A DNA stretch of 32,000 nt from positions 1-32,000 of the forward strand of contig BAAFSQ010000089.1 of the NCBI GenBank assembly GCA_054661495.1, written 5' to 3'. The notes under the pieces were generated by a model. That model was given only the letters and a program-made list of their open reading frames with translations, did not search any database and had not been told where the DNA came from. Source of the DNA: Zygophlyctis sp. KS116. Its lineage: Eukaryota; Fungi; Chytridiomycota. Each line of letters starts with the position of its first letter. Position 1 is the first letter of the stretch. Position numbers and translations under genes: made by a program. This document shows, in pieces, positions 1,890-32,000 of the stretch.

Positions 1890-2740
1890 TAGTTTTCAAT
1901 ACAGTATCTCAAAGTTCAAGATCAGTATATCTACTTGCCAATTGCAGATTTCTGCTATGGATCTGGATGAATAAATCCCATCTCTTGACCGATGAATTTC
2001 ATCGACACGCTGCTTTATTAAATGATCCCTCTGACAAAGAAAAAATCAGTTTTATTAAAGAATTTATTGCCAATGCACCTCATAATCCACCCCTTCGCTT
2101 TGAATCATTAACAGCGATTGATTTCATGGCGTGGATTGTTTCTTTGCGCAAGAAAGATGGCTCAACACTCGGTTATAATGCCCAAAATACAAATAGATCG
2201 GCTTTGTTTAATCTATTTCGTGACTACAGAAAGACTATGTCCGAGGAATTGTCGCGTGAAATAAAAAATACTTTTATTGGCTTAAAGAGGAAAATTGCCA
2301 TTAATCAACAAAATGGGAATGGATCTATTAAAGTGGGCAAATCACCATTGGCTTTAACCCTTTCCTGATTGTACTGTAGTTGAAATTTGGAAATTATGGA
2401 ATTGTGGAGACCCTTCTAATAATATCACATCATACAAGTATTTACAGCCAATTGATATGCCTTCTTCTAATTGTAAAAAGCGGCTCAGCGATTTAAAATT
2501 CTTAATGGAGAAAATTATTTCAAAGGCAAGATATCTCAATATATATTCTGATCGTCTTGATGAATTGGGGCAACAAGGGTATTTACTCAATGTCAAGACG
2601 TGATCGAGATTGAATTGTTGTTAGGAAATCAACGCAGAAGACGCTGTGCCCAACTTTCTTGGAGAACAGTTGTGAACGAGTTAAGAAACGAGGTTCTCGG
2701 ACATGAAATACTCAGGAAAGTGAACAATAAAATTTTTTAA
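1890..2740 (+). mobile_element. Internally deleted Crypton-like (tyrosine-recombinase transposon) remnant
   Basis: N-terminal core-binding-like segment (SRSVY...RFLLWIW...DFMAWIVSLRKKDG...RSALFNLFRDY...FIGLKR...KVGKSPL). It is joined at ~2355 directly to a C-terminal segment missed by the ORF track (FPDCTVVEIWKLWNCGDPSNNITSYKYLQPIDMPSSNCKKRLSDLKFLM...; then in another frame RRRRCAQLSWRTVVNELR). The R-H-R-Y catalytic domain is absent. Confidence 0.6.
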
Positions 2741-2793
2741 AATTTTATCCCACGTACGTCCCACAAATTCCGCCTAAGAATAATTTTCCTCAT

Positions 2794-4332
2794 TTTGGGA
2801 ATGCTGGCGTTGTAGAAACACTTTTTCGAACTGCACTAAGTAAGGCGGCAATTAGACCAGGTTCTAAAGAAGAAAACGGGTCAATATTAATTCTGCCAGA
2901 GGATTTAGATATTAATCTAGGGGATTATGTTGATAATAGTGATCCTTTTGAACCTTTAACGCAACTTTATCGCATGGATTCTGTGCGCACTAGCTTAGAA
3001 AGACTAAAGAATTCTTTTGAAATCGCTCTTCTGGAAGGATCGGAAATACCTAATATTGGTCATTTTATTTTCCGTGGTTCTCCTGGTACTGGAAAAACTA
3101 CAGTTGCGCGGGTAATGGCACAAATTCTTTTCCAGCTAAAACTGATTGGCTCTAAAAAAGTTGTCGAGACGACTGCCTTAGATATGACTGCTGAGTATGT
3201 CGGCCATTCAAAAGTCAAAGTCCATGAAAGATTGAAGGAGGCACAGGGCGGTATTCTGTTCATTGACGAAGCATATGCTTTAGGGAAAAATGTTTTTGGC
3301 CAAGAGGTGGTTGAAACGCTAGTAGCTGCATTGACCAGTAATGATTATAAAAGCATTGTTGTAATTTTGGCTGGATATCCAGGTGATATGAATAAGATGC
3401 TTGATTCGAATGGGGGTCTTAAAAGCCGCTTCACGAGGTTTATTGATTTTGAAGATTGGCTTGTTTCTGATTGCTTGCAGTATATTACTGATAATTCTAT
3501 CCAAGAAAACTTCTTATTTGAGGACGGGGTCTGTGATATTTTAAAGACAGAGTTCGAAAAGCTAATAAAACTCCCTGGATGGGGTAACGGTCGGGACGCT
3601 CGAAAAGTTTGGGAAGAACTTCTTGCCAACCGTAGTACTCGGATTCGCGATCAAAAGTTTGATGGTTTAAAGAAAATATCATTACTTGATGCAAAAGCTG
3701 CAATGGATTTATTCATTCAAGCAAGAATACCGCCAAACTCAAAGTGCTTATCTCAAACTGATTATATGTTTCAGCAACCGGTAATGGAAGATAACCCACC
3801 CGATAAACTTGCGGCTGATTATGATGTAAGTTTTTCATAAAGTAACATATTTAGTTCACGATCGATTCTAAACACAAAATGACGTGATTTTACTAAATGA
3901 TGATTTTGAAGAAGAATCTGATCATTCATCAGATGATACTGATGTTGATGCGCTAGAGAAATTCTTTTCAGAATGCATTGTATTTTTTATATTTATAACT
4001 GATAGACCGCTGTGGACCGTGATACCACTGTTAGCGATGAAATCTGGGATGAACTCCAAAATAAGAAGCGCATTTACCAGGCTGAAATAAAGCAAATTAA
4101 GCAAACTACTGATCAGCAGGGCGACCAGAAAGTAAAGAAAGGGGAAAAGGATGTTTTAAAAACTAAAACATCCAAAACGATTAAAAAAATGGTCAATATT
4201 CAGGATAAAATCAAAAAAATTGGAAAATGCAGCCAGGGATATATTTGGTTACAGGTAGGCGGTGGTTGGAGATGTGCAGGAGGTAGTCATTTTGTCTCTG
4301 ATGCTGAACTAAGAGATCGCTATTCAGAATAA
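2794..4332 (+). pseudogene. 5'-truncated CbxX/CfxQ-type AAA+ ATPase (C-terminal part of the fungal NFX1-type/multi-AAA family)
   Basis: Walker A GSPGTGKT, Walker B ILFIDEAY, GLKSRF and WGNGRD. Upstream of the ORF-track ATG the frame reads FGNAGVVE...ILPEDL, the tail of a preceding AAA module, with no start codon. Family C-terminal motifs RDTTVSDEIWDELQ and GKCSQGYIWLQVGGGWRCAGGSHFVSD are present. Introns at 3826-3854 and 3980-4005; apparent 1-nt frameshift at ~3876-3883. Confidence 0.7.
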
Positions 4333-4426
4333 ATATATTTTTCTTGAACGAATTAAATTTATAAACTCCCAAAAAACAGAAAATACAATAAAAAAGCCTG
4401 ATAAAATCTTGTATTAATCAGCAAAA

Positions 4427-5576
4427 TTAATTATCAAGAGTAAGGCCAGAATCAGATTTCTCCATTTTCTCTGGTTTAGCAGTCAAAATCCCTTTTCTGC
4501 CAGATTTATGAGCCTCATAAGTTCTTCCTAGTCGAGACTGAGGGCCTAATTGAGGATTCAGAATAAAGTCAAACAAAAGTTTAGTCCATGAAGAATGAAA
4601 AGCTAGAGGATCATAGTATTCTGAAGCAATCTCCTTTACTTTTTGAATTCTTGACCAAGGTACCTATAAAATCAAAATTTAATGAATTATACTTTTGTAA
4701 AATCATGATGTTCATTATGAAGTCCAATATTCAAATAAAGGTAATTCATTTTTCCATAATATGAGTAAGTCTCTTGACCATCTGTAATCGTAAAATGTTC
4801 CTGAATAAAATGCATTGCTGACGGATGTAATCCATAACCAAACCATAATGAACAAAAAACATATAAAAGTCCTCTTGGACCACAAACATTATAGATTAGT
4901 ACATCACAAACAATAGTAAAAACTAAATTAATAATTTCCCAGGTAGAAGGAACCTATTTTTTAGAATTTTCTTCATTTTCTCTACCTTTTGCATAGCAAG
5001 ACCCCGAACAACATACATCAATGGATAAAAGAACAAAAAGAGTAATTTTTTAAAAGAAGATCCCTTTACCATTTCAATTTCCCATTTTAAAGGAAGATCA
5101 GGATCTTTCCCTTCAACACCTTGAAACGCATGATGCTCCAAGTGATAACGACGAAAAGAACAAGCAATAGGAAATGGAATACAGATATTAGCGACAAGCC
5201 CAATTATTCTATTTACTAGTTGTGAGGAATGTACTAGACCATGAGCAGCCTCGTGAATTAAAACGCCATAAAGTTGAGTTATTGTTCCACCAAAAACGTA
5301 TGAAGTTAACAAAAGCCAAAATAAAGAGTCCGACACTCTACCAAAATAGTAAGCAACCGCCAACTGGACAATAGTAGACACAATAGTTATCGGAATAGAT
5401 TTTGTTTCAACGCCATACAATTCCTTAATTTCTGGATGTTTCTCCAAGATATTGAGTCGACGCTTAACATGGGGTTCATCCAGATCATCTTGAGCAATGT
5501 CATTGTGAATTCCAGGGATGGACCTCTTCCATGTCCCTAGATACTGAGGAAATCGACCGTCAAATTTTGAAATCAT
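4427..5576 (-). CDS. DES1: Sphingolipid (dihydroceramide) delta-4 desaturase
   Basis: EPHVKRRLNILEKHPEIKELYG N-terminal motif; His boxes HEAAH, HLEHH and HNEHHDF; HPSAMHFIQEH and QETYSYYG. Introns 4985-4954 (32 nt) and 4692-4664 (29 nt); stop TAA at 4429-4427. Confidence 0.92.
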
Positions 5577-7457: not shown

Positions 7458-10400
7458 ATGCCTCCAAAGAGTCGGATATCCAATCTGCTCAACAATTTTG
7501 ATTTTACAGTCGATGATGATCCAAACGAATCATTTGAAAACAGTCAGGGAGAGAATGCATTAAATGCCTTACTGTCGAGATCTAAAAAGAAGGATCAAGT
7601 AAGACTCCAAGAATTAACAGCCAGCGCAATTTAGAAAGTATAGCATCATCAAGTCAATCAATATCATCCCCTTCTCTAGATCAATCATCAAACTATCCAC
7701 ATGAACGACCAGCCATTGCTCCTAGGTCCACTTCCCAACGTCAAATCAATACTTCATCAGCATCTCCAAAAGAGCAAAAGTCTACAAGTCCAGGCCTTAT
7801 TCTTAGAAATATTCTTAATCCAGGCTCTAGAAAATCCAAACAATCACAACAAAGGTCGGCAGATGAAGAGTCTCTGCCTTCGTCCCAATCTCCAATTTCT
7901 CAAAGAGGGCCTTCAGCATTTGAAAAGCGGTCAGAAGAGAATGAAAAGTTGGAATTTAATCCAAATTTATCAAGTCGGAGGCCATCTGAAGAACAAGGGC
8001 AAAGATCTCGATCGGTTGGTAGACGGACATTTGATTATTCTAATCTCACTGCAAGTCTAAGAAAAATGTCTTTTTTTCCATTGTTTGCTCCTTCATCAGG
8101 AACAGATCAGAAATGGCTACCTGAACATGATTGGTATGCTTATGATATAATGCTCGAAGATTGTTTGCAAGATTCTAAAGCTTTTAGCATGCTTGCTTGG
8201 AATACATACGAAGAAAAGAAAGATTCTGTTATAAAAGTTAGATCGCAAGTTCAAAAAATTCAAAATACCCTCATTTCAACTCCTACTGAAGAGGGTATGG
8301 TTTTAATGATTCAGACTTTGTATTATTATAGGGATTTGGAATTGATTATTGTAAAGAATTTGGCCTCGGTTTTAGCATATAAAGTCATATCATATGAATC
8401 AAGTCTTAAGAATCTTGATTCTGAATTATCTTCTATAAAGTTCTTACTAAAAGATAAAGAAAATTTAATAGGAAAAATGGAAAAAAGGGCTCGTGAAAAA
8501 GAGTCAATCATATTAGATCTTGAAAAAAAGATTCATTCAACGAAAAAAGCTGCTTCAGACTCGGACACTGATGTTGAAGAAGATGTATCATGGAAAAAGA
8601 AGGCTAATAATGGATTCGTAATTTCAGACAGAGATGTACTGACATTGGCATCTATTCTACAGTCTCTAGATCCTAGTTTACCACATCCCACACCTTCAAA
8701 CTTGATTTCTTCTCTGTCTAAATTACAATCAGGCAATTCTTCGACATATTCAAATGTCGAAAAAGATAAATATAAGGATAAATACGAAGCCCTTGAGGCA
8801 AAATATAGTTCTAAGCAAGGGGAAGTAGAAAAATATCGGGAAGAAGCTAAAAAATGGAAGCATCGTTTTGAACGAAAACACTCTCATAATAATGAAACGA
8901 ATGGCGACAAAATTAATTATAATGAGAAATACCAAGCTCTTGAGGCAAAGTATACTTCAAAAACAGAAGAATTAGAAAAATATCAAGAGGAAGCAAAACA
9001 ATGGAAACGACGTTATGAAGAATCTGACGCAAAGAACTCTCAAATCAATGACCTAAGTCAAAATCAGTCAAATGATCTCAAAGAATTAAAAGCAACTCTT
9101 CGTCGTGAAGCGGAGCAAGAAATAAGCGCAATATCAGAGCAGGCAGATCGGGAAATGAAAGACATGCAAGAATCATTTAATCTTAGACTGCGTGAGACAG
9201 AAACTGGCTCTAGAAAACAAATCGATGATCTGAAAAAGAAGCTCGACACACAAGAGCGAGAGATACGGACATTGAAACTTGAAAGTACTGAATCTTTGAG
9301 AAAAAATCAATCTGTTGCGAACTCTCAAATGGACAAACTTCAAATAGAACTTGAGAGAGAATATCAAGAACAAATTGACGAATTAGAAAATAGACTGGAG
9401 CAGTCGGGATTAGAAGCTTCTAAAACACTTGAAAAAGAATTGGAGAAGCTGAGGGAAGCACATGAGATGGAGCTATCTTCACTTTCAAGACGCCATAAGA
9501 AAGATCTTGAGAAAGCTCAACATGATGGAATTATAGCCAAGATTGATACCCAGAATCTGTTAGATGAAGCACAAGCCACAATCGAAAGAATCAAAGAGGA
9601 AGCGTTTAAAGAAAAGGAAGAGAATGATCGTGAATTTGAATCTCTTACCAAAAAAATTAACCATCTGACAGATGAGAATCATAATTTATCACTAAGCGTT
9701 CAACAAGTCGATACTAAATATATTAGGCAGATTGAACAATTAGAGTCTCAGGTATCAATTTTAGAGTCTGAAAATTCAAATTTAAGAGGAATGGTCGATA
9801 TTGAGAAAGGAAGTTCAGATACTTTGAAGCAAGACATTAGAGACAAGGAAACATATATTTCAGAATTAGGAAAATCTGTTTTGGAATATCAAAAATTGAT
9901 GAAAGAATTTGAAGAAGTTGAAAATCGCTATAAAGCAGAACTCCAGAAAAAAAATGAACATATTGCCAGTCTAGAGGGAACAATTCAGAAAGAAAAAGAA
10001 TCATCAAACCAAGGATTACTGGCTCAATTAGAGGCTAAAGACGAAGCATTAGATCAATTGGATAGGATAAAGAGAAGGCTTGAGGCTACTGAACAAGATT
10101 TAAAGCGTTCTAAATCCTTTACAGATGAGAAGGAAACAGAGATTATTGATTTGAAAAAACTAGTTAGATCTCAAAACAAGCAATTGGAAACAGCACTTGG
10201 AGGCCCTGTAGCCAGTACTCCTAAACATAGTAAAGATGATTTGGAATCCAAGGTTGAAGTGTTGACTTCTCAAATATCTAGTCTAAAACGCCAGCTCGAG
10301 TATAAAGAAAAGGAAAGTTTTGAAGTTCGAATGGAAGCAGCAGAAGCATTTCAAAAAGCTTCAGATTTGGATAAAGCCAAGGAAGAAATCAATCGACTAA

Positions 10401-18810: not shown

Positions 18811-21043
18811 ATGACTCAAGTTTCTAATCTAGAATTTAAATGTCCAAGTCTTGAGTCGCTTGCATCATCCATACACACAGCAGATGATGTTAAATCTATA
18901 CAGGGACTATTGTTTGATTATATTGAAAATGGGAATATTTTAGAGTTGGCTTCAATGCTCAAGGATGATAATATAAATACTGTAGTACTGCAGATTTTAC
19001 TTATGAAGACTATTCCTAATGATGATGATGCTTATTGCTTAGAACCGGATCCTGCAGTGGATCATTTGTTGGGGAATTCGTAAGTAAACGCGACTCCAAC
19101 TGATAATAGATTTACAAATCTCAATGCTCTTCAGCTAGTATGTATTATGGGCGACGAGGATATGGCATGCTTAATATTCGATTTTATGGTTCAAAGGACT
19201 CTAGAAATGGATTCAAAAATATTATTACTAGAATTCATACATCGGACATTCGGACAAAATAATACAATCTTGCATTTAGCTGCATATCTTGGCCAAAAGA
19301 ATTTAGTCAAGAAATTGATTGAATTTGGAGCAAGTGTTTACGTACGAAATGATAATAACTATAAACGTAATTATTGATTTATTAAATATAGCAATTGATC
19401 TTGTGGATGATCAAGAAACAAGCTTAATATTTACAATGACTCCATCAGGTTTATAAAGAATAATTAATCGTAGCGCCTCCTAGATCAGAATTTAATCACG
19501 ATACTCTCCAAAAAAAGTTGACTAGAAAGAATACACCTGCTAAACAAAACATTTCTTTAACAAAAGGCAATTCAAAAAAAGTACATATTCAAGTTTTAAT
19601 CCAAAGTTTGTGAAATTTGATAGTTCCAGTATGCTGATGGATATATGTAAAAATGGATTATCACAATCAATGACAGTAAATGAATTAAAAGCAATGATTC
19701 ATGGATGTGACTACTTGGAAATTATCTCACCACAGAAAAACATGTCTTTGGTTCATATCGCATGTAGTTACGGTCATTCAGATATACTTGAAGTCCTTTT
19801 AGGATATTCAGCAATGCTCATAAACCATCAAGATGTTGAAGGATGGTCGCCGGCTCACTGTGCGTCGGCTGAAGGGCATGTCAATATATTGCGTTTACTC
19901 GGCAATTATGGCCCAATGGTTGCAAATGATGGGAATGGTTGGGATTTTTATGCTGAATCTCCAATTGATTTAGCGATTAAAAATTATGACGGTGAAAGTA
20001 TTGATGATGTGGCTCTTCCTGAAAAGAGGGATGAGATATTGCAGGTTTTAAGTGGTAATTATACTCCTTGAATTTCTAGATCTACGTTTAATTCAAAAAA
20101 AAAGGAAATTATCAAGTATTTCGGACAAAATCATAGTACATGATGATGTTACGTGTATGATTAATTAATTATCTTTGATCTAATATCTAGGTGTACTGGA
20201 GTCATCAATTGAAAGTTTGCATAATAGTATTTTAGGATCAATCAAGGATGCATTATTTCTTTCAAATGACTCTACTCTTTTTGCTCCAGTTTCAGAAAAT
20301 CAAAAAACTCATGTTTTCACTGGTATTTTATTTTTAAATCATTCCAAGATTATGAAAAGGAATCCGATCCGAAGACATCAATTACGCAACCTAAATTTAC
20401 AAACGGTAAGCAATTTTCAGTGATTTATTTAAAGATATACGCAATCAAATTGAACTTAATTTCAATTCAAATTCTCAGTTTACTGATTTAAACTCAAAGA
20501 TTTGTAATAGTAATGATACATTGAAGTCGCAATCAGAAGCACCTTTTATATTGGATTTAGGAAAAGTCACCAATAACGATTCCGAGTTGACCTCTGTTTA
20601 CGATGAATTATTACAAACCAATCTTGATCTTGTATTAGGCTCTAATGGGACGTTATGTGATGGTAATTATATCTCACAATAAAGACACAGATAAAGACAA
20701 AATTGATTTATCTATAAAAAACAAGCTAGAAAGCTTTCCAGAATCAGATGCTACAGTTTACACAAATCTCATCAATCCAATACGACCAGAATCAAATCAG
20801 AATTTAGAAGCAATCAAATATAATTCCAGAAATCCATTTTTGGAACTTATCTTCAGTTCACAATCAGAGGAGTGGAAACCTTCATCTCCATATATCCATG
20901 GCAAAGAATCTGATAATATGTATTCGATAGACATAAAAGATGCATCACAAAACAATTCTAGAGAATTTCAGAAGCTTAAAAGCTCAAGCGGATTAAGTAT
21001 TCAAGAAAGAATAAGAAGACTGAATCAATTGGGGGTTCAATGA
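18811..21043 (+). CDS. Ankyrin-repeat protein with a low-complexity C-terminus
   Basis: NTILHLAAYLGQKNLVKKLIEFGA, SLVHIACSYGHSDILEVLL and GWSPAHCASAEGHVNIL. About 9 micro-introns (19080-19109, 19367-19391, 19449-19473, 19581-19606, 20055-20079, 20155-20190, ~20323-20348, ~20406-20434, ~20663-20690) give one continuous frame. Confidence 0.75.
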
Positions 21044-21107
21044 CTAAACAATTAAATAAAAATCGTACCTGATATAAATATAGATTGTGCTTGGTCATAG
21101 CACTTGC

Positions 21108-24100
21108 TTATTGTTTTGGTTTTTTACAAGAACTTCGCTTGCAAAAGAGTTCAAAAGATATTTGGTCTAGCGTTCTTTCCAAGCTACTCCCCATGAATAA
21201 ATTTCTAAATCCTCGCTTATCATAGAAAAATCGGGCTCCATCAATAGCATGCTGATTTTGGATCAGTTTATCAGCCAGTTGCTTTTGCGAAATATCACTT
21301 AGATCGGTATGACCGTCAAAGAGCTCAAGAAGAGCGTGTATGGTATCTGGAAAATCTTTAACTTTACTGATGAGTCCAGCATAAACAGAGTCTTCTGGCT
21401 TCCTTTCTAATCCACCTTTCACACAGTTCAGATCGAAAAATATTGGTTCGTTAGGATGTCTCTTTTCATTTTTTCTGGATCTGAAAACATTAGCGATTTG
21501 ATCCGCTTCCCTAGCTGACAATATAATGATTTTTTGATTAGAGGGGAAATAAAGCCCATGTCGCACGGCACGCAGATAATCATCAAGCTTTTGATGTTCC
21601 AAAAGAGGAAATGAAAAGTTTTTTGTGAGATATATATCATTCGATTTCCAATTAATATGCTGCACGTTGGTTTCAGAAATGTGCCTTTTTAAGAATTCCG
21701 AAATTTGCATAGATCGGCCAATGTTAGAAGTTTCCGGGAGCGGATGAGCAAACAGGACGTCATAGTCCCAATCGTCTTCATCAGCAGGAGATAACTTGGG
21801 TAACTGCACTTCTTTTTCCTCCTCGATTTCCTTTTCATGTTCTAATTCCCTTTCCACTTGGTCAATGCAACTATAAGAGCTTTGAAAGACGTCACCTCCA
21901 AAATTATCTAAACTATATTTCAGAGTTTGTGTGATATGAGAGCTTTTCTGAAGGCAAGACGAAGGTATACTGTGGAGCTTGCGTGAACTAAAATTCTGTA
22001 TGGAGTCTGAAATCTTCTCACATTCATACATATCGGTTAAACTTGTTAGCTCTTTCTGTCGTGGTTCAAGCAAAAACTGAATTCCTTGACTACTATAATG
22101 ACCCAGACTTTCACCAATCCATTTTATAGAATTCAAAAAAGTATATAGAATAACATGCTGCATCATAATTGAAACGCCGTTTGTCATACCAATAGAATCT
22201 CTCAGTATCACCTCTACTTCCGTAGTAGTCGTCACAATCATAGTTTGACCATAGTCCAGTTTCCTCAAACGTCCAGCAGCCTGCATCAGGTCTTCTTTCC
22301 TCATTTTGGGGCCGATTGTCAGAATTGCTTTTGCAGTTGTTTTAAGCTTCATATCTGCTCCCCTACATCTGCTTTGATCATAAATAACAAACGCTTCTGA
22401 CTCGTGAATCGGGCTTGTCTCTAATGAGCAAAATCTCCCTTTTCGATCTATAATTGTCCAAGTTTGATTTTCCGTTGAGAAAAAAACAACACCTTTGAAG
22501 TTAGATTTCGCTAAGGCATGCAAAAATTTTACTGCCACCTCCTTATTGGAATAACCGCATAGTAATGCACCAGCATCGATAAAAGCGACTGCACCCCTAC
22601 TGAGAGCCAAATTTATCAGTTGATCCACAATATCTCTTTTTAATAAGGCATCTGGAATTGATTCATAACACGCATTTTTCATTAAATGATCGATCATCTT
22701 ACCATCTGTGGCTGCTAAAGAAATGTTTTTTGCATTTTGAAGATACAGAGGGTTTGGCAGAAACATACATGAATCAACAGTCCCAGAAAACCCACATTGA
22801 AAGTCGGATTTATTGGTGTCTGTTAGGTGCCAAGAATTTGCAGCGAGTTTGCCCGGGAAAATCATTGTCTGGGTGGGGAAAACGACGTAGCCCAGCCAGA
22901 AATTGATAAGAGGCATACTTTTTTCATACATTTCGTATAGCAGATTTCGTTGAACGAGATTTGCCAGGTCAATCTTTTCAACAGAATCAACTTCATGTTT
23001 AGCCCCATGCGATATAACATAAAGATCATATATTTGCTGATAAACGCTTTTTCGGAAATTTGGGCCAGATTGGAGTAGAGCGGAAAAAGCAGAATACAAT
23101 TGCTTCTTATCAAGTCCCCGGCTATAATATGAAATTATAGTAAGTCCAATCGCACAATCAGGCTGGGCGAATTCACTCCTAAGGACCGGTAAATTAGCTG
23201 CTCTGAAAGGTATAGCCATTGGAGTTTTATGTCCATCAACAACTCCGTAGTTAACGTTGTAGCGCAAAATTAAGCAATGTGACAATATACCATGAGCTAG
23301 GAAGCCCCGCAAGGCTAAAATATCGTTATAATGGTCAGCTCGTTCAAACTCTGACTCATGTACAATTGTTGAGACTGCTGTATCTGTGATGAAAGTAATT
23401 ATTCTTCCTATCAGATCTTTATCTGTCAATCTATTCATCCAATCTAATGAGAAATGAAGAATTATATCTGTGGATGAAACTATGGTTTTGCTGAAAAGCG
23501 AACGCGCTAATACATTTGTGAATTCGGGAAGTATCTTTTCCAGTGCACGGCAGGGTAGTAGCTGAAGCATATTATATTCTTGCTGCCCAACTTCTATTTG
23601 CGATGAAACTTCCTTACCTGCCAAGTAGTCTTTCACCTCAATTGAGTGTCGAAGATTATAAAAAATGGAAAACATAACTTCCCATCTTCTCTGACCAGCA
23701 TTTAAGAGCTCTGGGGTTCCTTCAGCATATACGAGCTGTCTAATTGGATTCATTATTTCGTCAGCTTCATCATAAATGTTCACAAAAGGTATAGAGTCTA
23801 TCTGTTCGAGAATCTGACTGACTAAATTGGGTTTCGCTTCATAAGTTTTCAAATACAGAGACAATCGATATTCTGGAGCTAAAATCAATCCACCTCCTAC
23901 ATTTTGGCAGTATTTAATACTAGCAAGAAGAGTTCTGGCATTCGGTTCTGTGAGCTCGACATCACGATTGAAGGGCATCAGGAGTAGCTTTTTATTGAAT
24001 ATTCCAGCAGTTAAAACCCGATGAAAATAGGAAAACCCTTCATTCAGTAAAGCTGAAAGCAGATAAATACTGACTACTTTAGCTTTTTCAGGCCGGGAAA

Positions 24101-27100
24101 ATTCTAGAAATAGGCACGGCAAAATAACTCTGGTTTTGCCGAGGCCCATATTCAACTGAGTAACCGAACCTGGATTTTTCAAAATATCGTTGATAATATC
24201 CATCTGCTCCGGGCGAATCTGAATACCTTGGTCTACTTCAAAAGCAAGCCATTCTGGGTGACTCTTGACATTGTATTTTCTGTATGTTTGAATTTCTCGT
24301 ATCGATTCTTCTACTTTTCGATTTTGAAGCAATTCAATAACTCGCTCTATTCGGTCCTCTAAAACGCAAAGCTGCATCCAATCTAGAATCATATTTCTAA
24401 AGTAATCAAGTTCATCCTTGGTCAGCATTGGGTTAAAACTTGAAAGAATTTCAGGATTGTAAGCTATTTTCGCAATATCCGCTAAAGTAAGATATGGCAA
24501 CTTATTTGAGGCCCTACTGATAATAAAACGGTGATATTCCCATCCTTCACTTCTTGAATGAATATCAGTTTCAGATATAATTTGTTTTTCTAGCTTTTCT
24601 CGCTCATTAACTATCGATTTCAATATTTTTTGAGTTTCTCTCAAAATTTTCTTTAATGATCCTGAAAGAATGGGCTTCCTTATAGACTTATGCGCATGGT
24701 ATGATTTACTTAATCCTGATATCATATTATTTCCTATTTCTGTTGATATCAAATTCTCTGGCAAATCAAATGGTAAACCATTTTTTGGCAAATCCTCGTG
24801 CTCTTCTAGATCGGAGCAACTTGATTCATTTTCTTCATTATTTAAATACCAATTATCAGAAGTTAAATGAAATAGTTCTCGCTCTTTGGCAGAAATATCC
24901 ATGAACTCATAAGTCGCTTTTTTTACTTCATCCTTGTTATGATGCTGCAATCTTCTTGGGAGGTAAACAATTTCGAGCATATTTTGGCATTCTTCTTCCG
25001 TCAATTCAGAGCGAATATTTTTGGGAGGATCTTGAGGGCTGATAGGTAGAACATAATGATTTAATGCACATGAAAATTGATTTTTATCCAAAGCAGCATT
25101 ATCAGGACTTTTGCCTTCATGAGAAAACATGAATTGGAGTTTTTTTGAATTCTCAAACAGAGAATGAGCTATAAGAACTAGCGCTGAAGGCAAATTTCTA
25201 AGTTTAAGCATTGAATTCAGCATATTAAATTCATCAGGATCAAGAGGCCGGTTAACCCAACAACCTCTCAATAATTGAATCGCCATTTCAAAGCCGGTCA
25301 TACCAGTCCACGTTTCTGGAACAGAGCTTCCAGTTGCTGCAAACAAAGAAGCCAGATGGATACGCCCGCAAATATTTGTGGCTTCTAATTGATGAAAGCG
25401 TCGATGCGGTGAGAATGAATTGTAAGGAAATACGATCTGCGTTATCAAATCAAAAACCTGATTCCGATCCCTTTTTAGTGTCACATCATTATTTTCCAGC
25501 TCTACCAGATGGTCAGGTACCAATATTTTGCTAGTTCGAGAATCTTTTTCCAATATAAGATAATTCTGGAATCCATTCCAGATTTCCTTCATAATTTGGC
25601 TCTTTTTAACTTTAAACTGTGCGTGGTCTAAAGAGATGAAGTAACTCGATCCACGAGAAAGTTCAAATGTAAGTCGATACCGCACAAACACTATTTTCAT
25701 GGTCCGTTTTTCAGTGATGTATACATGAATAAACTCTTTCAGATCAAATTTAGACCACATATTCAGAATCAAATTATTTAGGGGTTCATCCAAGTAAATC
25801 ATTCGATCTAGCTGTCCAATATGATTAGCCAAGTCTATGAAGCTTAGTTTGCGATGCTCTTGGGGGATTAAGAAAAGTTTGCCTCCGACGTAAATGTAAT
25901 AAACTTCTCGATTCATAAAAGGAATAGGACGAAAAACTATCAGATTATTATCATCAGATCGCCAATGGGAATATAGCGTTTATAGTCCTATTGGCAGATG
26001 CTGTCCCCATTTATCGATGTTAGCTGAGTCGAGCAGTCTTAACTTGAGTATCATATCTGTAGATGGTTCCTCTTCAAACACTAGTAAATGATTTTGAATA
26101 GATTTAAAGCTATAGTATCGACCTTTAGAAGGATATATAGTCTTTTTAGTTCCGTCATATTCTAATTCAGTGGTAAAGTTCTGATTTTTTCCAAATACTT
26201 TAAGATACAAAGGATGATTTAAAACATCTAAAGGAAGCCGCCCAGGCGGTTCGCCATTTAATAATGTCGTGCCATTCAGAACATTCAAACTTATATAATA
26301 TCCGTCGCTGTTTTTAGTATAATAGCAATATCGGCCATCGAGCTTTGTCCATTTCATATGATTTTCTACCCGGCCAGGAAAAATAATACGAGCGGCTTCT
26401 GTTAATTGATCATCCTCAAAAACCCATGAATGGAAACTCCGTGCAAGGATAAAGTTTACCCTGCAAATCAACTTTTTTGCGCTAGATTTTAGATTTTGCA
26501 CATTATTATCTTTAGTCATAGTGATTTCGTCTAAAATCAACGTGGCATTTATACGAACAATCAGAGAAAGTATTTTCTTCACTTGATCAGGAGTAAACGA
26601 TGGCACCATTTCATAAGCTAAAACTGCATAAAGAAGAAATAAGTGCTGCTTTGCTTGAGTTCCCTGGAGGATTTCAGCATTTGAAGTATTTCTTGATTTC
26701 ATTATCTCCTGGTCCATATTATTTGCCCAATTAGTAGCTATATTTGAGCTAGTATCTGCTAGCGACACAAAATTACCAGGAGCAAACTGTGAAAGAAAAG
26801 AAATTATTTCAATTCCAATTAAGAACTCGTGGTGATTTTTCGGTGCATCTTTCAAACGGTCGATAAATATTTCCAGTACTGATTGAAATCTTGAAATCAC
26901 TTGTTTATCATACAAAGCTTCCTTCCAGGATTTCACCGCCCCCAATTCATCAGAATAATCTAATTTGCCCAAATGATAAAAAACCAACTGAATCAACTGG
27001 TGAGTCTCACAAAACTTCAACGGTAGAGTCATCCGAGCTAAAGAGTCTAACACATTCATGATTTGCAGTAATGGAAATGCACGAATGTTTCCAAAAGTGA

Positions 27101-29594
27101 TAAATTGCTCCCGAGTTAAGTTGTCAGGTTTTTCATACAGTCTAGCAATTGCTAAATTTCCTCGATTTGATGGAGTTTTTCCCCCCCTTTGTTCTGCTGC
27201 CCACTGCAATTTCTCATTTGCGATTTGTTCTGTAAAATATGATACAGCTTGGTTTCTAGAAATAGTAAATGGATTTCCATGTTTCCATATAATTTCAGGC
27301 TGAAAGGCAGCAGGATACCATACTCCATCATCACGGCTAGAGATTATTTCGACATCATAAGATCCGAAATCTTTTGGGAATCGATGGCAATAAAGTAACA
27401 GAGGTGTATGAATACTTTCTTTTTTCTCTCTAAAATCGTAGGGACCATCATAAAATTCATGAAAATTCATCAATTGAGATAAGTCTGAATTTGCACCTTT
27501 CGATAGAAAAATTGCCCTCTGCGCTTCGTAACATTCACTCCAAATATCTCTCAGCAACTGAGGCATATAGCAAAAGAACAATGCTCGTTTTGCGTGGTCA
27601 TCAGGTTTTGGTAGCGACTGTTTTAAGTACGGTGGCGCCCTTTTGATTTTGGCGTGATTCACCCAAGCTGCTCTAATCTGATCTGCAATACGGTTGCATT
27701 GATTATCATATCTTTTCCAGTCCGGATTTGGAAAGTAATATTCATTGTAATCACACCAAATATTTCTTTTATGGCTGTCTCTCGCTGATGTAGCAGCCAC
27801 CAAGTTTTCTTGTAGCAATGCGATCTGTTGTCGAATAGAATCGCATTCTTTTTTCTTTTTCTTGATGGCTGCCCATCTATTATCAATTCGAGATTCTGCA
27901 TATGCTCTTTCTTGAGACAATAATTGGTCATATTGAGAGCGATGATCAGTGTCATTAACGAATTTATCAGCAAAATCAAACGTCCCAGTCACTTCCTCTG
28001 GACGTCCTGAAAAGACAATGGCTCCACTGACCTGGCGTCTTCTTTCCAGGTAATTGCTAATAAGATCTACGCAATCCCAAGCATTCTTATTTCTTAATAC
28101 CAAATGCTCCAAATCCCGAAAATCCAGCGCTGGGGCGTAATTTGATAGTGTTTTGTACGTTTGAACACCAAGCTCAAACAAGATACAGAACTTTAGCCAT
28201 TTCATTAACGCCTATATTTAAGAAAAAGAATAATTACAATATGGGATTTCAGTTCCACGTTCAAGAACGAATTTTGTTTTGAAGAAAAAGCTGCGATTTT
28301 CTCGCAGAGACTTTCCACCACCGATATCAAGGCTGCCGAATCACATTCAATATGAGTATTTGAGTCCTCTTTCAAGTAAGCGCGGGCCAGACCGAACAAA
28401 AATTTCTCCACCTGAACATGTACTATGGAAAAAAAATACGGTTCTAAAGCACTGATGCGATCATCATTCAGAAGATTGCGGCAATCCTATTCAGTTACTA
28501 TAATAAGAGTTTACATTCAAAGTCTTTAAATCATAAAATGGGATCCAATTCAAGTTAATTTTACTTTTTGTGAGTAAAGCTCGCTCATTTCCCTCTTCAT
28601 TCAGATCAGATACTGGAATTTTTTCCACTATAATTTTGGGGCTCGGCAATAACTCCATATCGTTTAAATTTGGGATATATGTCTGATACTGTTCAGAATT
28701 TGAAGCCTTTTCACTTTCCAACCCAACTTCCAAGATTTTTCTAATTTCAACAAATTTGGCTGAAAAAGAATCTGTATCAGGCCAAAAGCGGGAATCAGCC
28801 AAAAGCACACCGTATTTAGAGGCATCTGATAAATGCATCATTGCTTGATCTGCATAATCAGAAATGGGGGACTTATTCGCCACCTCCAAAGCCAACTGAA
28901 GGTGATATTCAGTGCAAAAACGAACAAAGCATCCTTCCGCATTCGTTACACGTGGAACCATTCCTAATTTCAAAACCGTTTTAATCAATGAGAAAGTAAG
29001 TGGCTCTTTTGTCTCTCTTTTAGTGCATCCCGTATGCATCGAAACATCAGTAAATCCACTATTTTGGGGGTGGATTTGGAGCTCTTTGACACTTTTAAGG
29101 CCATTTAACACATCTACACATTTCGAATAAAGAAATCCCGGTGTTTTTTGATGCCCGCCATCCAAGTTACTGGAATGTCTATCATTCCCTTTCTTTCCGG
29201 CCACTTTACTTAACTCTTGATTTACCAAATTTAGAAAATCATTCACTTTATCCATTGAAATAATTCCTGCGTACAAAAATGCAGGATCATCTCCTGCCAA
29301 AGCAGTATGTTCACCAGAGTTTACTGTGAAGGTCCAACCATCCAAGCCCACCAGATAGATGAGCCCATTCACAGGATCGAATGTCCGTGGCTTCAAAAGG
29401 ATACAAGCACCATATTCTTCTTTCCAATCAATTACCATGAGTTTGTCAAAATGAATCATATCATCAGATCCTTTCAAAATCAAAAGAGTTTCAGACAATG
29501 CACGCTGGTACTCTAACATTTTACAATCCAATTCTTCGTTTTCTTTGAGATCATTTACTTTCTTTTCCATAAAGGTCACTATCGCTTGATCCAT
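21108..29594 (-). CDS. Giant (~2,810-codon) DUF3638/DUF3645-family protein with an SF2/SecA-like ATPase core; one in-frame TAA, so possibly a pseudogene
   Basis: Exons 29594-28515, 28486-28238 and 28211-21108 (introns of 28 and 26 nt). Family motifs HPEWLAFEVDQGIQIRPEQ, QLNMGLGKTRVILP, LMPFNRD, LAPEYRLS, DEADE, QLVYAEG, YNVNYG, MAIPFRAANLP..RSEFAQPD, GFSGT, FIDAGA, YDQSRCRGADMKL and QAAGRLRKL. TAA at 25982-25980 is in frame with both flanking ORFs. Confidence 0.8.
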
Positions 29595-29869
29595 CTTCCA
29601 ACTTCTTTTTTTGGCAGGCCCTTGCGTCAATGATCACTCTCTCAACCACACAATACGCTGATCTCTGATGGTCTGTACTATTAATTGCATAATAAATTTA
29701 TACTGAGGACAATCTAGGACAAACGATACTGGGGATGAGGACAATAAACATGATCTTTCGGCAAAATTTACGCTGATTTTGATCAGACAAGAACCTGCAC
29801 AGTCAAAAGTGTATTTTATACAATACTTATGTAATCGTTATTATACGATTGAAATATTAAGACCGTCCA

Positions 29870-32000
29870 TCAGACTAAACCTGCGCTAAATATATACACA
29901 GCATCTCCTCTTTGTAAAAGGGTTTTTTGATCCGGATTAAGTGATAGATAGTATACCCCAACATCACTTCCCTGATCATCTCTTCTATATAAACCAATGC
30001 ATAAATTTCCTTTTAACATCATTTTCATAAAGAAGTCCAAGTAGGTTCGGCCGACCATATCTTGTGGAATCATTTTTTGAGAAATAAATCCATGATTCTT
30101 TGAGAGCTGATCCTTATCATGCAACGATTGGTTTTTATGAATAAGAACCATTCCCTACCAGTTAAAACTTGGTTATCGTACCCGTAAAATTTCCATTAGT
30201 TCATTATTGTAGTAAATCTGACATAGTAATGACTGAAATATTGAATTTGAGAAAACCTGGCCAGAAACAAAAGCAGGTATTAAAAGTTGGGCTTCAAATT
30301 AGCAAAATATTATGTACCTTGCAGATCTGAAAAATATTGAGTGTCTCCCTTGCCAATATATTTCATGTTTTCAACAAAAATAAATTCGACAATTATCGAG
30401 ATTTTTCTTGATTCTGGGCGAGCAGCACATATTGACTGAATATTCAGGACAGAAACTAGAGCAGGTGAGTCCACGGCGCGGTCACTGCAATCATAAATAT
30501 TCAAAAAGTACCTTCTATCTTCATTTCTAGCGAAAACAATTGCCTTTAAAGCAGTTTCTATAAACACTTTTGATAAATCATGAGCTATTATTAAAAGTGA
30601 ATATTTGTACTTGATAAAGCAGAACCTTTAATGAAAAACAGTTTCTTAAACATTTCCAAGCGTTTCCATCTATGAGGATCTGGCTGAGAAGGACAAAGGA
30701 TAACAACGGGTGTATCTGGGTCTCTTGTTCGAAACGTTGCCTTTTATAAGACTAGAAAAATCTTACCATAAAAGAAGAAATTCCTTCAGGAAAGGAAGAA
30801 TCCGAAAAACACAAAACTACGTGATCGTGAAACTCCTCAACTTTGACTTTTCCTTTCTTAACCTTTTGATCCATCTCAAGATCCTCCAATCCTCCAGTTT
30901 GAGCTATTAGTTCACTATTATCAGAGGGGTTAATTGGAATGATATCTTCCTGGCTACCTTGCTCTACAAAGCTTGAAAGTGATGTTTTTTTCTCTTCAAA
31001 GGGTGATGGAGGGAGCTCCAAATCCATTTCACTGTCAGTTTGAGGTCCAAACATTGCTATTTCACTAGCTAGTCTTGCATTTGTGGTAATAAAATAACCC
31101 ATTTCACCCTTTTAATCAATTATTGTGATATATACCCCCTTGAAGACATAACCATGTGGATTCAAGCACAATTTTCGAGATCCAAATGGATTCAGTTTTA
31201 CAGCAAATAAAACAGCATTGTATTTTCTGAAAATGTACGACGATGCTAAAGAAAATTCGTATCCTTGGTAAGCATGGGATAGAGGCATCTTCAATTAGAA
31301 ATCTTCATAAAACTTCTTACCGCATAAATTTCCATTTTAGATCCTTGTAGATATTCTTTCGCCCACTTTGAATCTCGAAATACCTTGGTTTCGCTGATCC
31401 TGCGCACAGTAGAATCGGATATTGAAGTAGTTAGCAAATAAATCAATGTCGAAAACCCAGGACAGATAATACTCTGAGCCATAATGGACATTTTAAATTC
31501 GCTTAAACATACAACTTCCTTTGCAACGTTGAGGAGATGTAATCTGCTATCAGGTTTATGAGTTTCCGCATATATGTCCAAGTCCCTTTTATATTTACGA
31601 AGTGCCTATATTATCAGTTCCTTCAAAATTACCAATGCTTGAGTAACCGTCACTGAGTCACGCATGTCAATTGTGTATGACGAATTATTATTTCTTAGAA
31701 TAAAACATGCTATAGCAGATTCAATTTTAGCTTTTGCCATTGAAGGAAATGCCAATGTATTCCCTTTGATATAAGACACACGACTCTTATAGAAAGGGCT
31801 CTCCAAAAGAGCTTGAACCTGCTCATTTGGATCAAAATTACTAAGTAATGCGACTCTAGTTTGCATAGTAATAGGCCCATGATCCTTAAAATTAGAATTT
31901 CAAGACTTTTACTTTGCAATAGAATTCCTGTAAAAATGCTCTCAGAATTACTGCTTCGAAATCGCCAATAAGAACAATGTGCCCAAACCCCTTGGCTAAA
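29870..32000 (-). CDS. Slo/BK-family potassium channel, C-terminal RCK1/RCK2 gating ring (5' part lies outside the window)
   Basis: HIVLIGD...FLQEFYCK|DHG, VSYIKGN, AKIESAIACFIL, VVCLSEFKMSIMAQSIICPGFSTLIYLL, EYLQGSKMEIY, LNPHGY, IIVEF...NMKY, PAFVSG, LCIGLYR and NPDQKTLLQRGDAVY. Multiple micro-introns (e.g. 31912-31885, 30317-30292). Confidence 0.85.

Follow-up and report, generated by a model that had tools for sequence, protein, structure and literature searches.

The 32,000-nucleotide (nt) window analysed here, from Zygophlyctis sp. KS116 (contig BAAFSQ010000089.1; all numbering refers to the window), carries on its minus strand a gene of the DUF3638/DUF3645 family that encodes a protein of 2,810 amino acids (aa). 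Our analysis makes it likely that the C-terminal third of this protein is a soluble superfamily 2 (SF2) ATPase of the SecA branch, and the chances that this core works on polypeptide in the manner proposed below are about even. Among the SF2 ATPases, SecA is the only well-studied one to move polypeptide, for which it works at a membrane channel. An earlier sequence-only reading of the window had proposed a SecA-type motor at this place; the gene is real and was correctly described, and its core has, in a structure model, a SecA-like architecture, the function being a prediction.

Modelled architecture of the ATPase core

The model covers the C-terminal core, that is, the protein less its N-terminal 1,730 aa and its last 223 aa. 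In structure comparison of the kind suggested in the sequence-only reading, SecA (B. subtilis 6itc and 1tf5; E. coli 2fsf and 3bxz) gave the best overall superposition, and the fit was best in the closed-clamp state. The insert looked for between motifs II and III is likewise present in the model, where one strand leads out of the core behind motif II and a second leads back ahead of motif III. These flanking strands (model residues 205-209 and 499-503) probably pair and would thereby form a stem. The likeness to SecA comprises an SF2 core, a two-strand stem that carries an insert behind motif II, a G-x-S/T-G-T motif III, an RGxDxKL motif V and a long helix after the second nucleotide-binding domain (NBD2). 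That the insert and stem are SecA-like in architecture appears likely from the model, and it is structure rather than motifs that backs this assignment. The elements of the core are listed below, with motif positions taken from the frame translation unless another basis is given.

23736..24347, minus strand: first part of NBD1 (DUF3638) with Q motif, Walker A and Walker B, from Pfam and homolog conservation
24218-24204, minus strand: Q motif IRPEQ, within the first part of NBD1
24158-24132, minus strand: motif QLNMGLGKT (Walker A)
23771-23754, minus strand: motif DEADEI (Walker B)
23721..23735, minus strand: outgoing stem strand after motif II (model strand 205-209), candidate SecA-type clamp strand
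22854..23720, minus strand: insert of ~290 aa between motifs II and III, at the PPXD position of SecA, from the model
23118..23264, minus strand: DUF3645 strand-hairpin-helix (Pfam), the most conserved non-ATPase motif, candidate equivalent of the C-loop/PP-loop
23261-23241, minus strand: motif YNVNYGV
22839..22853, minus strand: return stem strand before motif III (model strand 499-503)
22779..22793, minus strand: motif III GFSGT, with G, S, G and T invariant in 55 homologs
22188..22778, minus strand: NBD2 with motifs V and VI, from conservation and secondary structure
22370-22344, minus strand: motif V RCRGADMKL
22283-22263, minus strand: motif VI QAAGRLR
22071..22163, minus strand: 31-residue helix after NBD2 in the model, putative scaffold-helix equivalent

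The insert is about twice the size of the PPXD and, searched in isolation with Foldseek, gave noise, with no DinG/XPD row. Within the DUF3645 element, G368, P380 and D397 are invariant in alignment A1. Against SecA chains that keep the scaffold, ~70-80 extra residues align, too few for a full wing, and the corresponding profile test was negative.

Sequence comparison with SecA and with nucleic-acid helicases

The Q, I, II, III, V and VI motifs, Walker A and B included, are intact and conserved, and tandem RecA-like domains are present; the protein is thus an SF2 ATPase, and probably an active one. All seven motifs named in the sequence-only reading, the acidic run included, lie at their given places in one minus-strand frame and in SecA order, but that order is generic for SF2 and does not single out SecA.

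Sequence comparisons do not identify the core as SecA, and the earlier expectation that a profile search would return SecA first was not borne out. SecA_DEAD, SecA_PP_bind and SecA_SW gave no sequence match, and a 55-member family profile retrieved no SecA chain from the PDB, its top match being MDA5 over motif I. With hhalign the probability was 3% against a narrow SecA set. In an ungapped block test motifs I, II, III and V fell in register and motif VI, the DUF3645 hairpin and the stems did not; the hhalign register that places DUF3645 on the C-loop was non-significant, with no arginine at the matching place. This last register, first drawn by eye, was not the best offset in the block test and is not counted as evidence. 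Against a diversified SecA set, hhalign rose to 20-23% along a collinear path of 479 columns, which is not significant, and against divergent SecA-like Legionellales open reading frames (ORFs) to 38-58%, over NBD1 only. A head-to-head comparison with single SF2 proteins did not discriminate; the top-scoring one was a divergent SecA-like ORF, aligned across motif I alone. Pfam gave weak DEAD and ResIII matches alone on the core, a single-sequence PDB search gave no match, and neither did a profile search of three bacterial genomes. Canonical SecA is excluded by the sequence test, and the similarity to SecA is not significant at this level. The SecA-type motor of the sequence-only reading is therefore supported in part, by its architecture (the structural match, the stem and the insert) and not by sequence similarity; nor is the family confined to eukaryotes, since bacteria and viruses also encode members.

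The differences from SecA are considerable: identity is ~10%, the insert has twice the size, none of the SecA Pfam families is matched, and the C-loop arginine, wing and two-helix finger have no clear counterpart in the window protein. This protein also has a 1,730-aa N-terminal scaffold and a period-2 run; it is non-essential, patchily distributed and without a known channel.

An alternative is that the protein is a nucleic-acid translocase or sensor resembling RIG-I, FANCM or DinG, with the insert as a lid and the acidic run as an auto-inhibitory nucleic-acid mimic. We regard this as rather unlikely, since the nucleic-acid helicase matches extend over the shared two-domain core alone (~345 residues). 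In RIG-I, MDA5 and FANCM-Hef only the core aligns, and their insertion lies later in the chain, after motif III, whereas the insert here follows motif II. XPD and DinG, which appear in the Foldseek rows, do carry their Arch insert between motifs II and III, but only 327-353 of their residues align; the window insert has no Arch-domain match (a missing match being weak evidence) and no conserved cysteine set for an iron-sulfur cluster, as no cysteine is near-invariant in 55 cores. The acidic character of the run is not general either, as described next.

The period-2 run and the flanking domains

The acidic run noted after the motor is present, about 130-150 residues past motif VI, and was found to be strictly period-2, with alternating glutamates that are >90% conserved.

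From 21854, minus strand: acidic run, from the frame translation
21804..21866, minus strand: period-2 (E/Q)-x run, candidate tethered clamp ligand, from alternation in homologs
21108..21803, minus strand: C-terminal domain of ~230 aa, no known family, conserved in eukaryotic members, from alignment
24348..28211, minus strand: N-terminal scaffold in exon 3, ~1,290 aa, conserved, with a coiled-coil stretch, from homologs

At least 5 alternating E/Q residues occur in 51/53 eukaryotic members, against 2.4 expected after shuffling. The same periodicity follows the motor in 14/18 full-length Legionellales proteins, with Q in place of E (EVQVQKQVQ..., ENQSQSQSQ...), and is seen in the L. pneumophila protein as well. 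Because the Legionella runs are Q-rich rather than acidic, it is the periodicity that is kept and not the charge, as an extended strand would predict and a nucleic-acid mimic would not. In the model the start of the run forms a low-confidence strand (830-834), and one alignment ends with model residue 831 on B. subtilis SecA residue 800, which is a hint only; this C-terminal region of SecA is reported to extend the clamp sheet by one strand (PMC6599042).

The tethered run is conserved at a fixed distance, as would also suit an ATP-driven switch related to SecA, which would grip nothing but its own period-2 segment and so open and close the scaffold without processive movement. The SecA wing and finger regions are not clearly present and no channel partner is known, which speaks for such a switch; against it, every catalytic motif is retained, as processive motors retain theirs. 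By sequence the switch looks no different from a polypeptide motor, and we hold it to be improbable. For the N-terminal scaffold (1,730 aa in all), no family was matched, searches gave coiled-coil noise only and hydropathy gave no membrane segment.

Gene model, in-frame stop and selection

The gene (29594-21108, minus strand) starts with an ATG at 29594 and spans 2,810 codons by arithmetic. As the sequence-only reading had it, four ORF pieces join into one gene through two micro-introns and one in-frame stop: P0177, a natural relative of 2,818 aa, aligns with the four pieces in the same order and over their whole length at 36-40% identity, with alignment joints at 367/368, 451/453 and 1190/1193. 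Homology searches and folding were run exon by exon rather than with the joined protein as query.

28515..29594, minus strand: exon 1, 360 codons, N-terminal region, 36% identical to P0177 25-367
28487..28514, minus strand: intron 1, 28 nt, GT-AG; its flanking exons are directly joined in the homolog
28238..28486, minus strand: exon 2, 83 codons, 39% identical to P0177 368-451
28212..28237, minus strand: intron 2, 26 nt, GT-AG; missing from the relative L185, where the flanks are contiguous in one frame
28211-21108, minus strand: exon 3, holding the single in-frame TAA
25980..25982, minus strand: in-frame TAA, private to the KS116 assembly and not spanned by an intron, as homologs are contiguous

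Exon 1 matched no Pfam or NCBIfam family, and hydropathy gave no signal or membrane segment in it. The 12.7-Mb assembly holds one copy of the gene, and contamination is unlikely, given the genome-type micro-introns and relatives in syntenic context. In L185 (35-38% identical), frame-preserving breaks at 4433-4467 and 7520-7593 (L185 numbering) are probably other short introns; since these sit elsewhere, intron positions differ between the two genes.

A different base at 25982 gives a sense codon in contigs of three other freshwater runs (X3, depth 96; X4; X8), so that the stop is either an allele confined to KS116 or a mistake of the assembly; L185 also lacks it. A hidden intron was ruled out by the absence of a GT-AG pair and by contiguous homologs, and an alternative genetic code by there being one in-frame stop only in 2,810 codons. 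The syntenic contig L002 (96-97% identical, against window 19125-32000) carries a clear null allele: three deletions (309, 1,898 and 213 nt) and two frameshifts have struck the gene, which also holds three stops, in a setting where the neighbouring ORFs have none. One of these deletions begins exactly where the window's stop codon sits. Between the window gene and L002, dN/dS (the ratio of nonsynonymous to synonymous substitution rates) is ~0.3 along the gene and 0.31 in the ATPase, slightly above most neighbours (0-0.37). These values, together with the sense codon in three runs, rule out a species-level pseudogene; by this sequence measure the gene is under purifying selection, yet it is dispensable in some strains. 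The RNA runs contained the gene in none.

Further variation was seen in run X3, where window 25063-25188 is represented by two alternative contigs, one at depth 69 and the other at 49, which points to heterozygosity or to a pair of strains, and in run X8, which has a 48-nt in-frame deletion within exon 1 (window 29143-29192). Elsewhere in the window lie an ORF resembling a MULE transposase (771-1559; PF10551, E 5.6e-7) and an AAA ATPase with an AAA_lid_6 domain (2731-3837).

Family distribution and related giant proteins

The last ORF piece passes the Pfam cut-offs for DUF3638 (PF12340; 147.9 bits, cut-off 31, E 3.6e-43) and then, in order, DUF3645 (PF12359; 37.4 bits, cut-off 25, E 1.6e-9). 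Relatives of 1,000-2,800 aa occur in algae, oomycetes, chytrids, ascomycetes and many metagenomes, and by structure search further ones came to light in giant viruses of the klosneuvirus type, at E 1e-25 to 1e-32. A0A7D3V923 and A0A1V0SG42 in BFVD are examples of these viral DUF3638 proteins, and Hokovirus encodes four; scans of viral contigs found no family member.

Among 201 genomes of Legionellales (the order of Legionella longbeachae), DUF3638 exceeds the cut-off in 85, where most of the ORFs concerned measure 2,500-5,000 aa and many genomes have several, against 0/301 genomes sampled across the whole Pseudomonadota and 0/14 controls. Among the species with a named member are L. micdadei and L. 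hackeliae, as well as L. pneumophila, whose protein has 4,603 aa (219 cluster members). Scored with the eukaryotic core profile, Legionellales members reach E 1e-31 to 1e-62, and their hhalign probability is 100%. In a quick FastTree, which is unrooted and carries no weight on horizontal transfer, one branch has the 18 Legionellales rows all on the same side, and the window protein clusters with members from metagenomes and of algal type, not with ascomycete ones. The giant members across Legionellales are new here, as is the (E/Q)-x run kept in eukaryotic and most Legionella members.

The Legionellales proteins (L164-L181; P0124) form two giant clades, of ~3,000-4,400 and 4,600-4,850 aa, within which the 4,603-aa protein belongs; over their C-terminal 1,000-1,600 aa conservation is lower, some stretches are internal repeats and no Pfam family matches convincingly. 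A relative of the larger clade (P0151, 3,782 aa) is labelled Simkania negevensis (Chlamydiae, protist-associated), a label that may come from binning. Beside their canonical SecA, relatives of L. longbeachae (L129-L133) have additional SecA-like ORFs, 960-1,350 aa long, which share ~30% identity with E. coli SecA across NBD1-PPXD-NBD2.

Several relatives bear the automatic label 'ubiquitinyl hydrolase 1', as the sequence-only reading had remarked. A deubiquitinase is, in our judgement, scarcely credible: it is favoured by the source names alone, hidden Markov models detected no peptidase or OTU/UCH family, either in the pieces of the window gene or in the three relatives searched at full length, and the labelled domains model as an SF2 ATPase, although the unmodelled N-terminal 1,730 aa could hide an enzyme.

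Other giant proteins with secA domains, in eukaryotes, Wolbachia and Amoebophilus (PMC3639933, PMC3482391) and in L. fallonii (lfa2470, PMC4256840), are likewise patchy and shared with intracellular bacteria; unlike DUF3638 proteins they are recognised as SecA by sequence, and the families are set apart by description. The giants of Omnitrophota and actinobacteria (10.1101/2023.11.21.568195; PMC8195603) embed a SecA motor with PPXD, beside a canonical SecA and without wing and scaffold, and have many membrane segments and enzyme domains, whereas the DUF3638 family is soluble and eukaryote-centred. Self-export has been proposed for those giants (10.1101/2023.11.21.568195; PMC8195603), and our model resembles the SecY-bound state, so one may picture a SecA-like pusher docked on Sec61 or another pore that exports proteins or itself. 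We consider this very unlikely: hydropathy shows no membrane segments, Legionellales keep canonical SecA too, and the family is patchy in a lineage that tolerates null alleles.

Proposed mechanism and role

For a soluble SecA-branch motor, ATP binding would close the two domains, and opening and closing would ratchet an extended polypeptide. The stem strands and the DUF3645 hairpin may act as a clamp, holding the polypeptide through strand pairing with its backbone as in SecA, and could hand over the extended chain in the style of the hand-switching model of SecA (PMC9926265). The period-2 run would reside in this clamp, either as an auto-inhibitory plug like the C-terminal segment of SecA or as a loading handle, from which the motor would start pulling its own C-terminal part or a bound client. 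The 1,730-aa scaffold may select the client or trigger, and the output would be unfolding, extraction or release of protein, probably in the cytosol, since a SecY/Sec61 partner is without evidence.

The distribution over Legionellales, klosneuviruses, protists and fungi, together with frequent loss, suggests a role in host-parasite conflict. To the protist-infecting bacteria and viruses and the null alleles found here can be added a large DUF3638 gene family in microsporidia (PMC5423893) and a highly polymorphic predicted effector in Plasmodiophora (10.64898/2026.10.14.759018); none of these proves it. In Tetrahymena, peptides of a DUF3638 protein were detected, in a paper that calls the mechanism undefined (PMC12615304), and the passages on DUF3638 consulted assign no fold. 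Other eukaryotic SecA-domain giants have been published; the SecA-like proteins met in the literature belong to other families, those of Amoebophilus being effectors (PMC3482391) and the actinobacterial ones toxins (PMC8195603). No paper linking DUF3638 to SecA was found in the open literature searched, outside which lie most subscription journals and ECOD, where the link may already have been made. We advance only tentatively, as the less probable outcome, the full proposal of channel-independent monomeric SF2 motors that load on a built-in period-2 peptide, unfold or release cytosolic proteins and are used in conflict by hosts, giant viruses and Legionella.

A second SecA-like branch, very divergent, soluble and present widely among eukaryotes, would, if true, test the clamp mechanism without SecY. 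On this reading a large family would lose its 'ubiquitinyl hydrolase' label, which nothing supports, and the 4,603-aa L. pneumophila protein and klosneuvirus proteins of unknown function would gain a testable job, in a family that is tractable in Tetrahymena and Aspergillus. If the full proposal holds, these proteins would represent a protein-remodelling machine of a type otherwise confined to ring-shaped AAA+ enzymes.

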